32,000 bases of DNA from Wallemia ichthyophaga EXF-994 (lineage: Eukaryota; Fungi; Basidiomycota), in the NCBI RefSeq assembly GCF_000400465.1, contig NW_008806290.1, positions 120,001 to 152,000 on the forward strand, given 5' to 3'. The notes beneath the pieces were generated by a model. That model was not told the DNA's origin. It made no database searches and was given only the letters and a program-made list of their open reading frames with translations. The translations under genes and the position numbers were made by a program. This document shows, in pieces, positions 1 to 26,104 of this stretch (its first letter is position 1; the number at the start of each line of letters is the position of its first letter).

Positions 1-2009
1 CATTACCGAAAGCTTCACTCGCCTTTATGCAATGCTGTTGGTTGGTAGATACGTCAAAGCAGTAGCAAACGTAGACTGAGTCAACAGTGCTCGTTAAAAG
101 ATCACACCACATTCTGATAGCGCTGTAGGTGAGCCATCCGGCAACTATTGCTATTATCGGTGAATGTAGTGATTGGTTCAAGTAATGAGCACAGTATATA
201 AATCCAGCTACTGCGCTAAGTAGAGATACTGTAATTGCAAATAATCTAATAGTAGTCTTTACTAGTAGATCATCCATCAAGCCCTTCACTTCACGCCTAT
301 TGACTAACTGTTTGACACGTTTGGCAGATGGCGTAAACGCTTCACCCGTTATTCCAACATGAATTAGTGCGTAATTCGATATATGATCTATAAACCCAAG
401 CGTCATAGCTGCAACCATGCTGATCGCTGTGAACACGATTGATACTGGATGAAAACGCGTAATTCCACTGTTGTTAAGATTGCGCAACCGCACTAATACT
501 CTCACGAGCAAGCTAGCAGTGGTGAGAATTATTGATGCCAAGCAAATACTTCCAAATGAAGCATGAGTTGATCTGTAAAAAGAATTGCTGACGATTATGT
601 GCGGTGATGGTTGATGCGGATCGTGTCTATTGAAATACCAAGCACCCAGAACACCACTCGTAGTGACGGCAGCTATACCCCGTAACAATCCCCATGTCCA
701 GAAACCAACGAGAATAACATAAGCTACCAACAAGTCTGATGACGTATTTACGTGCCAAATCAAACCGCTGTCATTACTATCCCAATGCCCTATTCTCAGC
801 AGCTTATAAACTAGCCATGCATAAGGTATTGAGAGCAGTGTTGAAAAGAGTGTGAGTCCCAGGTGGTATATGATTAGTGTTGGGTGCTCAAGTATCACTT
901 GCGATGACAACTCGACGATTTTTATTGAGCGCTTAAGTTTATGCCTTCTTATATAGAGAGTACGGCTGAACCATACTATTATTATCATGGGTATAAGTGA
1001 AAAGACACGTAGGCTTTAGTGAAGTTAGCGTGCACGAACAATTGAAAGCCCACGTACCCAGTGCTCTGCCACCACGATGACCAACTAGAGTCAGACTCAT
1101 CGTCATCAATGAAAGAGCCTGCAAATGCCCAGGTAGAGCTTCCTAGCAAACCGAACAGGATGACAGCGATTGCAGTATACAGTATCGGTGTGATTGCGTT
1201 TTTGAGGATTATTAGATGCATAGCACCCAGAAGTAATGCTATGGTTGTCAACGCGACGAGCAGAGGTGTCGAATGTAAGAGGGTTGTCGTGATGAATGGT
1301 GTTGCGTTCGGTGGCGGTATCGCGGTATCCTTAGCGTGTAGTTAGATTCGTAAGCTCTTAGAAGAAAGACACTAACATTATTCCGAAATAATGTAAAGAT
1401 ACCTATACTTATAACGGATATTATAGAAAATCCATATGTGACTATAAAGGGAGCGTCGCGATATTTTCTAATTGGCGTACGAGTAATTGAAGGGACTGTA
1501 GGTGTGGGTGCTGGGCTTTGTATAAATAACTGATGCGGCTGCTGCTCGTCTTCCTCTATGTCGTCATTGTGATCGCCTTGTGGCCGATTTAGTAAAGGCT
1601 GAGATAACTGAAGCTCAATCTCTTCTTGTGGTTCTGGTTCTGGCTCTGGCGTAGGTGGCTTATGGAAGCTTAATTTTGACTGGTTAGTGAATAGAGATTG
1701 TGCTTGGTTGATGTGATTTGGGTCAGGGGTAGATACTCCAGATCGCTGTGAACCTGTTGAACGATTGAGGTGTTCGTTAGGAGACGGGGATCGCGATTCT
1801 GAGGCTGGCGTAGAGTTTCTGTTCAGTGTCGACTGCTGGAGGTGCGCCATTTCCTGTTCAATCTCGTCATCGTTCATCCACGGCCCTTGATTTGAGCATC
1901 TATCGTCGTAATTGGCGTGAAATATCGGTGAATGACCTGAGCTTGCACCTAATATCCGTGAACTCAGGAATTTTGAAGCATACGCCGTGAAATTGTTTGA
2001 ATTGTCCAT
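1..2009 (-). CDS. Choline transporter-like (CTL/Pns1/SLC44 family) multi-pass membrane protein; 3' end runs off the window
   Basis: ATG at 2009 (MDNSNNF...) and a disordered acidic N-terminus. Introns 1330-1376 and 1014-1057 join the ORFs into a run of hydrophobic helices with CTL-like motifs (TTSGVLGAWYF, SFGSICLASII, SNYALIHVGITGEAFTPSAK, STVDSVYVCY). Confidence 0.8.
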
Positions 2010-2367
2010 GACCGTATCAATCAACGAGGCTTTGACGGTGTCATATATCACCTCAATGATATCACCAAATGAATTATAGGTCTCTGTAGCTATCACTTCG
2101 CTTGCACAGCAATTGTGTGATTTAATCTCTTATCACCACAAGTTGCTTCATTGATACGATTACACGAATTCATTCAAAATGATTTAGTACAATTATTTGA
2201 TGATTCTATTACTTGGAATATACTCTAATTCCAGCACCCGCATCGATTTCACCCAATCACATGTGTATTACTCTTATCGTACTTTGAACCAGCGCAATGA
2301 AAAAGATCGACATTAGCAAATCATTTTGACAGATTCTTGATCTGTTAGCAAAAGACAGGCAAAATGT

Positions 2368-2371
2368 AAAA
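2368..2371 (-). terminator. Candidate Pol III terminator (T4) after the permuted tRNA trailer; further T4 tracts near 2361-2364 and 2350-2353, and T5 at 2300-2304
   Basis: Minus strand reads ...CGGTTTCC-TTTT-ACATTTTGCCTGTCTTTTG directly after the tRNA 5' half. T4 is a weak terminator in yeasts, so the real end may be at the T5. Confidence 0.45.
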
Positions 2372-2379
2372 GGAAACCG

Positions 2380-2457
2380 TACGAGTCAGGCGCTCTAACC
2401 CCTGAGCTAAAAGCGCTGGGTTGCGCCTTCGCGGATTTGAACCGCGGACCTCCTGAT
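2380..2457 (-). tRNA. tRNA-Thr(CGU): Circularly permuted tRNA-Thr(CGU): 3' half (38-73) at 2457-2422, 5-nt linker ACCCA at 2421-2417, 5' half (1-37) at 2416-2380
   Basis: The rejoined 73-nt sequence GCGCUUUUAGCUCAGGGGUUAGAGCGCCUGACUCGUA|AUCAGGAGGUCCGCGGUUCAAAUCCGCGAAGGCGCA folds into a complete cloverleaf. Acceptor GCGCUUU/AAGGCGC (7 bp, one GU), D stem GCUC/GAGC, anticodon stem CCUGA/UCAGG, loop CU-CGU-AA, T stem CGCGG/CCGCG with UUCAAAU loop. G15-C48, the Thr identity pairs G1-C72 and C2-G71, and A73 are present. Confidence 0.9.
2433..2443 (-). promoter_or_regulatory. Pol III B box (GGTTCAAATCC) in the tRNA 3' half
   Basis: Exact match to the GGTTCRANTCC consensus. Confidence 0.85.
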
Positions 2458-2478
2458 AGATCGTCGGCAAGTGCTTAA

Positions 2479-2489
2479 CCACTAGACCA
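2479..2489 (-). promoter_or_regulatory. Pol III A box (TGGTCTAGTGG) in the leader upstream of the permuted tRNA
   Basis: Matches TRGYNNANNGG and lies 35 nt before the B box, close to the spacing in an intronless tRNA gene. Confidence 0.7.
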
Positions 2490-2924
2490 CGTTTCCATAA
2501 AAACAATCTTTATCATAACAATATATTATCAGGACTTTTTCCTGTATCATAATTGCTGCTAAATTGAGCAAGATGGCTGTTTTATTACCCTTTACGAGTT
2601 CTTAAAACCGCAATTGACTACGTACCAAAGATACTCCGATGGTTCAGCGTAACTGAGAACCACCAACAATTCATAAATTGCGACGCTAGTCAAGAAACAC
2701 TTCCAGTAAATTCAGTACCCCCTTTGACTTCCTTCATGGTTTAATATTTATTGATGGACGCAGTTTTTAACATTTATCGTCTTAACAATATATTCAGATT
2801 TCATCATCAGCAAGATTGGTATGGTTCTGCAACTGTTAATTCTGCAGTAAATTTGAGAGTAGTTTTAACGTGAACAGTGTAGTGAAGTGCTCTGTACTGG
2901 TCCAGGTAGATGTGACATGCTTCA

Positions 2925-3560
2925 ATGAGTAAATCTTGGTATATAATATGGTTTCACTTCAAATCACTTCGACAAGACCTTACTGTAAGATGGATCAAGA
3001 ACGATTTCACAGTACAAGTCTACGAAATTCACGCAAGACTAGCTTTAGAGAATGGCGACTTAGGTGAATACAATCAATGCGCTGCTAATTTACAACCTCT
3101 TTATCAATTAAATCTTATGGGTAACAAATTAGAGTTTATAAGCTACCAAATTCTATACCTATGTTATAGCAGTAACTGGTCAGCGGCGAATGTACTTGTT
3201 GGACTGTTGTCAAACGAAAAGAAAGAAGCTTATGAGATAAAGCACGCTTTAAAGATACGTTCATCACTACTTACTAACAAATATCATCTCTTCTTCAGAT
3301 TAAATTAAGATTAGTTAAATATGTCTGCTTACAGTATTGATATTTTCGTTGAAAGAGAAATGTTGAAGGCATTGATAATAATAACTAAGGCTTACATAAA
3401 GATACCATTATCCTTTATAAATAATGAGCTCAAATTCGAAAATACTACGGCAGTAGAAATCTTTTAAAGCAACTCGGCGCTGTTAGCTGTTTCAAAAGGA
3501 GCGCCGTTGGTGTCACAAACAATGGCGTGCCATCAGACCATGAAAAGATGCTTCTTTGTA
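2925..3560 (+). pseudogene. SAC3/GANP/THP3 (LENG8-like) PCI-domain gene remnant with in-frame stops
   Basis: ORF has FKSLRQDLTV..IKNDFTVQVYEIHARLALENGDLGEYNQC, typical of Thp3/LENG8. The same frame continues through TAA (3306-3308) and TAG (3312-3314) into LNMSAYSIDIFVEREMLKAL...TKAY, which is also family-like, and then meets another TAA. No intact N-terminus was found. The right boundary is approximate. Confidence 0.7.
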
Positions 3561-24705: not shown

Positions 24706-26104
24706 ATGCCACCAAAGAAGAACCAGCAACCAGAGCAAAAGATTAGACTTGGAAGACCGGGCAACAACCTCAAAATGGGTATTGTTGGTCTCCCAAACGT
24801 CGGAAAGTCATCTCTTTTTAACATCATGACTTCTTGCGATCTTGGCAAAGCTGCCAACTTTCCTTACGCTACCATTGAACCAGAAGAGTCAAAGGTTATC
24901 GTTCCTGATGAGCGTTTCGATTGGTTAGCTGACCACTACAAGCCTGCATCAAGAGTCCCAGCTTTCTTGTCTGTCATTGATATTGCCGGTCTCACTGCTG
25001 GTGCTTCCACTGGTGCCGGTCTTGGTAACGCCTTCTTGTCTCACGTCAGAGCAGTTGACGGTATTTTCCAAGTCGTTAGATGTTTCGACGACGCAGATGT
25101 CATCCACGTTGAAGGTGATGTCGATCCTATCCGTGATATGGAGATTATCCAATATGAATTGCGTTTGAAGGATCAAGAATGGTTGGAGAAGGCCGTCGAC
25201 TACCAAAAGCGTACCGCAAGATCCGCCAACCACACCACGCTCTCTGGTAAAGCTGAGCACGACAAGCTCCAAACTATCATTAAAGCTCTTGAAACTGTCG
25301 CAGGTAACGAAGAAAGTGGTGTTGAAGGTATGGACATCCGTAAGCAAATTTGGTCTGCTAAGGAGGTGAGTTTTACTCTTGCGTCGCCAGCTTTTGCAGC
25401 CTATTATGATGATAAAGAGCATTGCTCGAAACCCAGCTCGTCGAAAAGACAGGAGTAACGCCCATGTCTATGAGATAACGTTTATTCTGATTCTTTTTGC
25501 TCAACCTGGCACGCCCTTATTTTAAAACAAACTAACACATATTCAGGTTGACGTTATTAACGGTTTGAACTTGCTCACTGCTAAGCCAATCATTCGTCTT
25601 GTCAACCTTTCAAAGCGTGACTATTGCCGCAAGAAGAACAAGTGGCTCGGAAAGGTCAAACAATGGGTCGATGAGAAAAACCCTGGTGATTTAATTATCC
25701 CATTCTCAGTTGCACTTGAGGAAGAGCTCATGCAACTCTCAGATCAAGACAAAGAAAAGGAACTTAAGAGCTTGGAAGAAGAGTACAAGTTGCCTGTCAC
25801 TCAATGTCTCGGAAAGATTACAACAGCAGGATACCAATCTTTGGAACTTATCAGATACTTTACTTGTGGTGAAAAGGAAGTTAGAGCATGGACAATCGCT
25901 TCTGGTACCAAAGCACCACAAGCTGCAGGTCTCATTCACTCTGATTTCGAAAAGAACTTTATCTGTGGTGATATCATGACCTACGATGACATAAAAGAGC
26001 ACAAGACCGAGAACGCCGTGAAAGGTGCTGGTAAGATGAGGCAACAGGGTAAGCCTTATGTGATGAAGGATGGTGATATAGTCTACTGGAAGTCTAACGC
26101 TTAG
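24706..26104 (+). CDS. OLA1: Obg-like ATPase OLA1/YchF
   Basis: [76 protein letters not shown]. One intron 25366-25546 (GTGAGT...ACTAAC...CAG) joining WSAKE-VDVING. Confidence 0.97.
25402..25494 (+). ncRNA. Intronic box C/D snoRNA, snR69-like (predicted guide for LSU rRNA Cm2948, yeast numbering)
   Basis: Box C ATGATGA (25406-25412), guide AAACCCAGCTC (25429-25439) complementary to the conserved LSU GAGCUGGGUUU, D' TCGA (25441-25444), internal stem AGACAGG/CCATGTCT, C' ATGAGA (25470-25475) and box D CTGA (25487-25490). It sits in an intron about four times the local size. Confidence 0.8.

Follow-up and report, generated by a model that had tools for sequence, protein, structure and literature searches.

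The stretch of DNA analysed here, referred to as the window, comprises 32,000 nucleotides (nt) of contig NW_008806290.1 (positions 120,001 to 152,000, forward strand) of Wallemia ichthyophaga EXF-994, a halophilic, non-pathogenic basidiomycete with a compact genome. Close to its beginning, on the minus strand, lies a gene for the threonine transfer RNA (tRNA) with the anticodon CGU, tRNA-Thr(CGU), whose two halves stand in reversed order. Read along the minus strand there is a 39-nt leader, the 3' half of the tRNA, the linker ACCCA, the 5' half, a trailer and a T-run, which is the order of a circularly permuted tRNA gene. The leader carries an A box upstream of the B box of the 3' half, and the subject of this report is whether this leader A box stands in for the one that the permutation has displaced. 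[quoted passage not shown]

2521-2525, minus strand: TATA-like element TATAT, at -29/-25 if +1 = G2496
2499-2503, minus strand: sense-strand T5 run immediately ahead of the leader, at -7/-3, a putative block to Pol III read-in
2458-2496, minus strand: leader of 39 nt, predicted to be cut from the mature tRNA, consisting of GGAAAC(G), the A-box hairpin, ACGA and UCU
2491-2496, minus strand: GGAAAC, leader strand of the predicted outer helix, pairing with GUUUCC of the trailer (2377-2372)
2479-2489, minus strand: leader A box TGGTCTAGTGG, at +8/+18 from the predicted start
2465-2489, minus strand: 25-nt D-arm-like hairpin carrying the A box (constrained fold)
2458-2464, minus strand: ACGA (2464-2461), pairing with U33-C34-G35-U36, and UCU (2460-2458), the bulge before A38
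2422-2457, minus strand: 3' half of tRNA-Thr(CGU), A38 to the discriminator A73, containing the B box
2443-2433, minus strand: B box GGTTCAAATCC, at +54/+64, in the T arm of the mature tRNA
2417-2421, minus strand: linker ACCCA, from the discriminator to G1
2380-2416, minus strand: 5' half of tRNA-Thr(CGU), G1 to A37
2409-2399, minus strand: the tRNA's own displaced A box TAGCTCAGGGG, within the 5' half
2372-2379, minus strand: trailer CGGTTTCC, of which GGTT(T)CC is kept in a second species
2350-2371, minus strand: terminator region of three T4 runs (2371-2368, 2364-2361 and 2353-2350)

The minus strand reads TTTTT-AT-GGAAACG-TGGTCTAGTGG-TTAAGCACTTGCCGACGATCT / ATCAGG AGGTC CGCGG TTCAAAT CCGCG AAGGCGC A / ACCCA and, after the linker, GCGCTTT TA GCTC AGGGGTTA GAGC G CCTGA CTCGTA / CGGTTTCC TTTT. 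No tRNA is found in the 32-kilobase (kb) window by ARAGORN, nor by Rfam at the gathering score, and searches of the locus as written, of the leader together with the 3' half, and with introns tolerated gave no tRNA either. When 2416-2380 is joined to 2457-2422, however, ARAGORN calls a perfect 73-nt tRNA-Thr(cgt) cloverleaf, and it is only this rejoined sequence that it calls. The leader and 3' half as a tRNA in their own right, and an intron-containing reading of the locus, were both rejected on these searches. [quoted passage not shown] As a result of the permutation the tRNA's own A box, TAGCTCAGGGG, is found not upstream of the B box but 23 nt downstream of it, as the original prediction had held. 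The B box, GGTTCAAATCC, fits the consensus GGTTCGANTCC, is the sole match to it within the window and is identical in the five strains compared below.

Two further observations concern the body of the gene. There is a T4 run inside it (2409-2412, minus strand; acceptor strand and U8) through which Pol III must read. Since this internal T4 must be read through, and since the gene's own terminator is only a T4 backed by two more T4, a T4 run is probably a weak terminator in W. ichthyophaga. The model for the bacterial Y RNA-like YrlA gives a weak match to the permuted core (2385-2454, minus strand), with 22 bits against a gathering score of 69; homology to YrlA was rejected, the match reflecting the fact that T arm, acceptor and D arm follow one another in the same order in both.

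The A box of the leader, TGGTCTAGTGG, fits the A-box consensus TRGCNNAGTGG at all five conserved positions (1, 3, 7, 10 and 11). It stands upstream of the B box, on the same strand, with a gap of 35 nt between the two. The original prediction had given the letters and coordinates of both motifs (2489-2479 and 2443-2433), the gap and the 39-nt length of the leader exactly, and its description of the spacing as nearly normal also holds, the gap being 33 nt in the rejoined tRNA and ranging in yeast from 31 to 93 with a mode of 32 (PMC11724288). Order and strand are those of a type-2 Pol III promoter, and the distance falls within its range of 31-93 base pairs (bp). The motif TRGYNNARTGG occurs twice in 64 kb (both strands) against 1.57 occurrences expected by shuffling, so that the motif alone is not enriched and only its strand and position count. 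For the strict consensus, a rate of 2.5e-5 per site over ~30 permitted spacings gives a chance of ~7e-4 for such a placement, and with a looser A-box consensus the chance is ~7e-3.

The Rfam tRNA model aligns 2489-2430 to its positions 8-63 with 15.6 bits (threshold 29), which indicates that the leader and the 3' half together keep the layout of a tRNA gene, though they are not a tRNA. The 7 nt GGAAACG precede the T of the A box where the acceptor strand would be, and this register matches that of a tRNA gene. The A box agrees with the Thr 5' half at the consensus-defining positions T8, G10, A14, G15, G18 and G19. Outside the A box, however, the similarity of the leader to the Thr 5' half is no higher than that of shuffled sequence, and a recognisable decayed copy of the Thr 5' half was rejected as an account of the leader for that reason. 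The idea put forward in the original prediction that the locus keeps a promoter-only tRNA half in its leader is therefore a fair picture of the arrangement, but it overstates the origin. Candidates for the source of the leader are an old 5' half that has decayed except at the promoter positions, a piece of another tRNA, and convergence; the sequence GTGGTCTAGTGGT is one that we take to be typical of Pro, Glu and Val tRNAs.

Transcription is likely to start at about 2498-2496, because the T5 run would stop read-in from upstream and the conserved trailer implies that GGAAAC is transcribed. The argument from the trailer is that GGTT(T)CC is conserved, so that its partner GGAAAC would be part of the transcript and the start would lie upstream of the A box. 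A 5' end near 2497-2510 had originally been expected, and it is the T5 run at 2503-2499 that narrows this interval. In the predicted layout TATAT at -29/-25, the A box at +8/+18 and the B box at +54/+64 are followed by the first T4 at +126. The A box also starts at +8 in the tRNA-His template used in yeast (PMC11724288), as counted here from the -44..+20 sequence. In yeast affinity comes from the B box, whereas tauA, the ruler for TFIIIB, is put in place by the A box (PMC11724288). The displaced internal A box of the permuted gene can no longer position tauA. A 26-nt direct repeat (2502-2527 and 2769-2794, 77% identical) includes the TATA-like stretch AATATATTGTTA; it may be due to chance or may be a duplicated upstream element, and as a lead it went nowhere.

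In the constrained fold a 4-bp helix, ACGA/UCGU, stands between the bulges UCU and A37-C-G, with the outer helix GGAAAC/GUUUCC beyond. This fold of leader and trailer is predicted to be a relaxed bulge-helix-bulge at 37/38, with minimal support from covariation, as in the type II permuted genes with which it was compared and whose junction lies at 37/38 (PMC3978253). The A-box hairpin (2489-2465) starts exactly at the T of the A box and branches between the outer helix and the anticodon-leader helix. The structure of the junction is complete without it and, being dispensable for the geometry of the junction, the hairpin in this model looks like an added, removable module. The fold of the transcript as a whole is marginally better than that of shuffled sequence (z = -1.95).

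The locus was compared among five strains, the window and four W. ichthyophaga assemblies from NCBI (L012-L015), which are conspecific with it and therefore provide population data and not a measure of deep conservation. All four are collinear with the window and ~99.8% identical to it, and in four out of four the permuted locus is present at the same syntenic site on contiguous scaffolds. A fibrillarin fragment likewise clusters, at 90% or more, with W. ichthyophaga and W. hederae, and a mucoromycete source, suggested by Mucorales hits of 55% for neighbouring genes, was rejected. Across 21 kb the five strains have 52 segregating sites (0.25%). Within 2358-2526 there are no variable sites in the 78 mature and linker bases, against seven (2526, 2480, 2475, 2465, 2379, 2366 and 2358) in the 91 other bases, an enrichment of the non-mature bases of the locus of ~30-fold over background (P about 2e-9). 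Site 2526, just 5' of TATAT, has three alleles (A, C and G) among the five strains, and the closing pair of the hairpin, U2489-G2465, becomes A-U in the other four. Invariant mature sequence amid hypervariable flanks is a hallmark of active tRNA genes, attributed to transcription-associated mutagenesis together with purifying selection (PMC6130373). The match to this pattern suggests that the locus is probably transcribed and used, the step from animals and plants to a fungus being one that we infer.

More distant relatives were also found. Two Logan contigs (L002 and L003) come from a more distant lineage, with 99.1% identity, and a third (L004, from SRR25399871) comes from a different species that is neither W. 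ichthyophaga nor W. hederae; in L004 the protein next to the tRNA has 76% identity, and divergence at four-fold sites is 37-42%. All three contigs begin within the 5' half of the tRNA, L002 and L003 at window position 2409 and L004 at 2407, and run from the truncated 5' half into AGGTT(T)CC and then a T-run. The equivalents of the terminator are a T4 plus a T8 in L002 and a T5 in L004. Between L004 and the window only the coding region and a 46-nt island, made up of the 5' half and the trailer, still align. Because the 5' half, trailer and T-run are kept in L004 while the other intergenic DNA no longer aligns, the permutation is, as judged from this comparison, older than the split from the L004 species, and has been maintained.

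Attempts to extend the comparison took several routes. Synteny by way of the neighbouring SAC3/GANP-like open reading frame (ORF) led only to relatives of up to 56% identity, none of them from a close species, and synteny by way of the neighbouring transporter exon led to graded relatives, of which L005-L009 had too little upstream DNA or no tRNA. One scan of prokaryote genomes and two of JGI metagenomes matched neither the permuted junction nor the 3' half. Nor did a search turn up any spurious ORF called over the permuted gene, and other open frames end before the A box. In W. hederae (L016) synteny is broken beside RFC1, and there is no B box within 21 kb. A JmjC/dynactin-type gene (L016 1-5568) occupies the place of the transporter-tRNA segment. 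With the segment replaced and no B box in those 21 kb, the tRNA-Thr locus of W. hederae must lie elsewhere in its genome.

The best single explanation of these observations, and a geometrically convincing one, is that the A box of the leader is a surrogate, although we would put the chance that it is correct at about even. It would contribute the A box to a type-2 Pol III promoter that is ordinary in other respects, and the permuted tRNA-Thr(CGU) gene would be an expressed one. TFIIIC would anchor through tauB on the B box of the 3' half (2443-2433), and tauA would reach 35 bp upstream to the leader A box (2489-2479) and not to the tRNA's own downstream A box. TFIIIB would thereby be placed over the TATA-like element (2525-2521) and Pol III would start at about 2498-2496, giving a transcript of ~130 nt that runs through the 3' half, the linker and the 5' half to the T-runs from 2371. 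Pairing of the leader GGAAAC with the trailer GUUUCC, and of the leader ACGA with the anticodon, would set the 37/38 junction in the relaxed bulge-helix-bulge. The splicing endonuclease would then remove leader and trailer, tRNA ligase would close a 78-nt circle, and RNase P and 3' trimming would open the circle at ACCCA, so that with CCA addition the standard enzymes would suffice. The A-box hairpin (2489-2465) might most simply be a surviving piece of a 5' half, left from the duplication that created the permutation.

A number of observations weigh against a surrogate A box. In yeast a weak upstream pseudo-A-box could not replace the real one; that pseudo-A-box matched only four positions and competed with the real A box (PMC11724288). 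The TATA-like element is correctly placed and could drive transcription alone. At 2480, which is position 10 of the A box, there is a G in the window and L014 and a T in L012, L013 and L015, so that three of the four conspecific assemblies read TGGTCTAGTTG and lose a conserved position, one of the five (1, 3, 7, 10 and 11) that were mutated in the yeast study (PMC11724288). The leader is among the most polymorphic stretches (three sites in 39 nt), and the A box has no visible depletion of variable sites, with 1 in 11 against 2 in 28 in the rest of the leader, a small sample. The original prediction looked for an A box that is conserved in orthologous loci while the leader around it diverges; within the species, one of the five conserved positions is polymorphic. 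The perfect A box may even be the derived haplotype: the first base of the trailer, 2379, is a C linked to the G allele of 2480 and an A in L002, L004, L012, L013 and L015, so that the outgroup L004 shares its state with the T-allele haplotype, 2480 itself not being polarisable. The probability that the nine constrained positions would have persisted neutrally since the second species split off is ~10%. No leader of a second species was recovered by the searches by transporter and SAC3 synteny, in metagenomes and prokaryote genomes and in W. hederae. Finally, the breaks of the L002-L004 contigs within the 5' half imply that the same 5' half has a different, non-exon continuation at one further locus or more per genome. 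The branch point directly follows A37 in L002 and ...CTCGTAAG in L004. These further loci are paralogues, possibly more permuted copies, and do not have the form of plain intron-less genes; this copy may not be the sole source of tRNA-Thr(CGU).

Several of these points also feature in the other explanations that were considered. The strongest of these, though in our judgement still unlikely, is that the motif is a relic, the remnant D arm of an upstream tRNA copy, and that the TATA-like element drives transcription through TFIIIB, with or without TFIIIC at the B box only. The position of TATAT at -29/-25 is what would be expected of such a gene, a TATA-driven mode has been proposed for the permuted genes of algae, and in vitro TFIIIC can be dispensed with in transcribing yeast tRNA genes that have a TATA box (PMC3978253). 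The polymorphism of A-box position 10, the hypervariability of the leader and the ~10% chance of neutral retention over the minimum age of the permutation are also compatible with a relic. On the other hand fungi keep TFIIIC as far as is known, and the consensus-defining positions of the A box survive at canonical spacing, yet the rest of the leader is without similarity to a tRNA 5' half. TATA-like pentamers, moreover, arise easily in AT-rich intergenic DNA, and a B box makes a poor promoter when no A box lies upstream of it (PMC11724288). That the motif is a chance A-box-like 11-mer in the leader is highly improbable; its count in the window equals the shuffle expectation (2 against 1.57), but the positional probability is 7e-4 to 7e-3, and the resemblance continues beyond the 11-mer into a stem-loop like that of a D arm, in register with the T arm.

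An improbable account is that the element acts at the level of RNA, the D-arm-like hairpin for example shaping a three-way junction in the precursor so that the endonuclease can measure 37/38, and its resemblance to an A box being incidental to a tRNA ancestry. In the constrained fold 2489-2465 is indeed a discrete hairpin beside the anticodon-leader helix, and the change of its closing pair from G.U to A-U between strains keeps the pairing. However, the G-to-T change at 2480 breaks a pair of the stem and the loop is variable at 2475. In the constrained fold both the bulge-helix-bulge and the outer helix form in full with no contribution from the hairpin, and the whole transcript folds only marginally better than shuffled sequence. 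It is distinctly improbable, too, that the locus does not work at all and the motif is functionless, the locus being a product of rearrangement beside, or in addition to, a canonical tRNA-Thr(CGU) copy elsewhere, or else a tandem array that assembly has collapsed. Logan contigs from three samples end within the 5' half, the same 5' half with another continuation is present elsewhere, and all the assemblies appear to be based on short reads, which would fit such an artefact. Yet five assemblies have the identical arrangement, and hypervariable flanks surround mature parts that do not vary. A second species, in which intergenic DNA has ceased to align, keeps the trailer and T-run, rejoining gives a perfect cloverleaf, and the extra copies do not look like plain intron-less genes.

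Permuted tRNA genes have been described from algae (Cyanidioschyzon merolae and prasinophytes), the Bigelowiella nucleomorph and the archaeon Thermofilum pendens, and the likeness of the Wallemia locus to them is considerable. In both, 3' half and 5' half follow each other in that order on one strand, separated by a short linker, an AT-rich or TATA-like element lies upstream and a T-stretch downstream, leader and trailer pair in the manner of a bulge-helix-bulge, and a circular intermediate is expected (PMC3978253). Reviews up to 2026 list such genes only from algae, a nucleomorph and archaea, whereas the host here is a basidiomycete fungus, so this would be the first permuted tRNA gene in Fungi. 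The difference lies in the promoter. Algal permuted genes are held to be independent of TFIIIC and are thought to be TATA-driven, C. merolae being without recognisable TFC1 and TFC3, and no A box has been described in algal leaders, in contrast to the leader here, which has one at the canonical distance from the B box (PMC3978253). The part of the original prediction that saw in this locus a solution different from the algal one is in keeping with the lack of described leader A boxes in algae, but TATAT at -29/-25 leaves the algal route open. That the locus represents the first family of permuted tRNA genes in Fungi, surviving in a TFIIIC-dependent organism thanks to a detachable A-box module left in the leader by duplication and kept by selection, and hence a hybrid promoter of which one half is disposable and the other is mature tRNA, is a tentative proposal to which we give somewhat less than an even chance.

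Precedents for parts of this arrangement are found in yeast. The genes RPR1, snR52 and ZOD1 have, as here, a promoter element in a transcribed 5' leader that is cut from the mature RNA, and in RPR1 a tRNA-like promoter lies within the first 84 nt (PMC2566860). In these genes, however, the leader holds the A box as well as the B box, and what matures is an RNA other than a tRNA, whereas here only the A box is in the leader. As the B box is the T arm of the mature tRNA, the locus partly works like the RPR1/snR52 family but is not a member of it. The yeast U6 gene SNR6 demonstrates that the boxes used by TFIIIC need not both lie within the mature RNA. Its A box is internal and its B box downstream of the terminator, so that, unlike here, the order of A then B is kept and nothing is permuted. 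In dicistrons led by a tRNA (tRNA-Ser/tRNA-Met of Schizosaccharomyces pombe and tRNA-5S of Yarrowia) a downstream RNA depends on upstream A and B boxes in the same transcript (PMC2566860). The upstream unit of a dicistron is a complete and functional tRNA, while here it would be a hybrid in which a leader that carries an A box, and is no tRNA, is followed by the 3' half of the same tRNA that the gene produces.

It has been argued that permuted tRNA genes are tolerable only where transcription of tRNA genes uses upstream elements over TFIIIC, and their absence from most eukaryotes is a puzzle (PMC3978253). If the surrogate A box is real, a fungal A/B pair rebuilt by way of the leader would be a second way of keeping a permuted gene expressed. 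It would offer a natural test of how far TFIIIC needs the A box to belong to the mature RNA. On the tentative proposal of a module left by duplication, the locus would also be a living intermediate in the tandem-duplication route, from which it would follow that permutation can arise without internal promoters first being abandoned. In Wallemia genomes this tRNA-Thr(CGU) gene escapes standard tRNA finders.

The permuted gene lies ~270-390 nt upstream of a choline-transporter-like gene (647 amino acids in the NCBI annotation), in its promoter region. An ORF of 282 amino acids at 1248-2096 (minus strand), which has no Pfam match, is the fast-evolving N-terminal exon of that gene. On the other side the tRNA is adjoined by ORF fragments of SAC3/GANP (Thp3-like) type at 2925-3467 (plus strand), for which the NCBI W. 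ichthyophaga assemblies have no annotated gene. The closest relatives of these fragments, at ~55%, are from Mucorales; the fragments are unusually polymorphic, with 11 segregating sites in 3070-3469, and they look like the remnant of a decaying or foreign gene. An Rfam search of 2480-3000 had no family matches. Within that interval the sequence GCTGATGATGAAATCTGA at 2780-2815 (minus strand), ~300 nt upstream of the tRNA, has C-box-like and D'-like motifs and is a candidate small nucleolar RNA (snoRNA). The only Rfam match at gathering score in the window is a C/D-box snoRNA of the family Afu_304 at 25402-25494 (plus strand), with 46.7 bits against a gathering score of 35.

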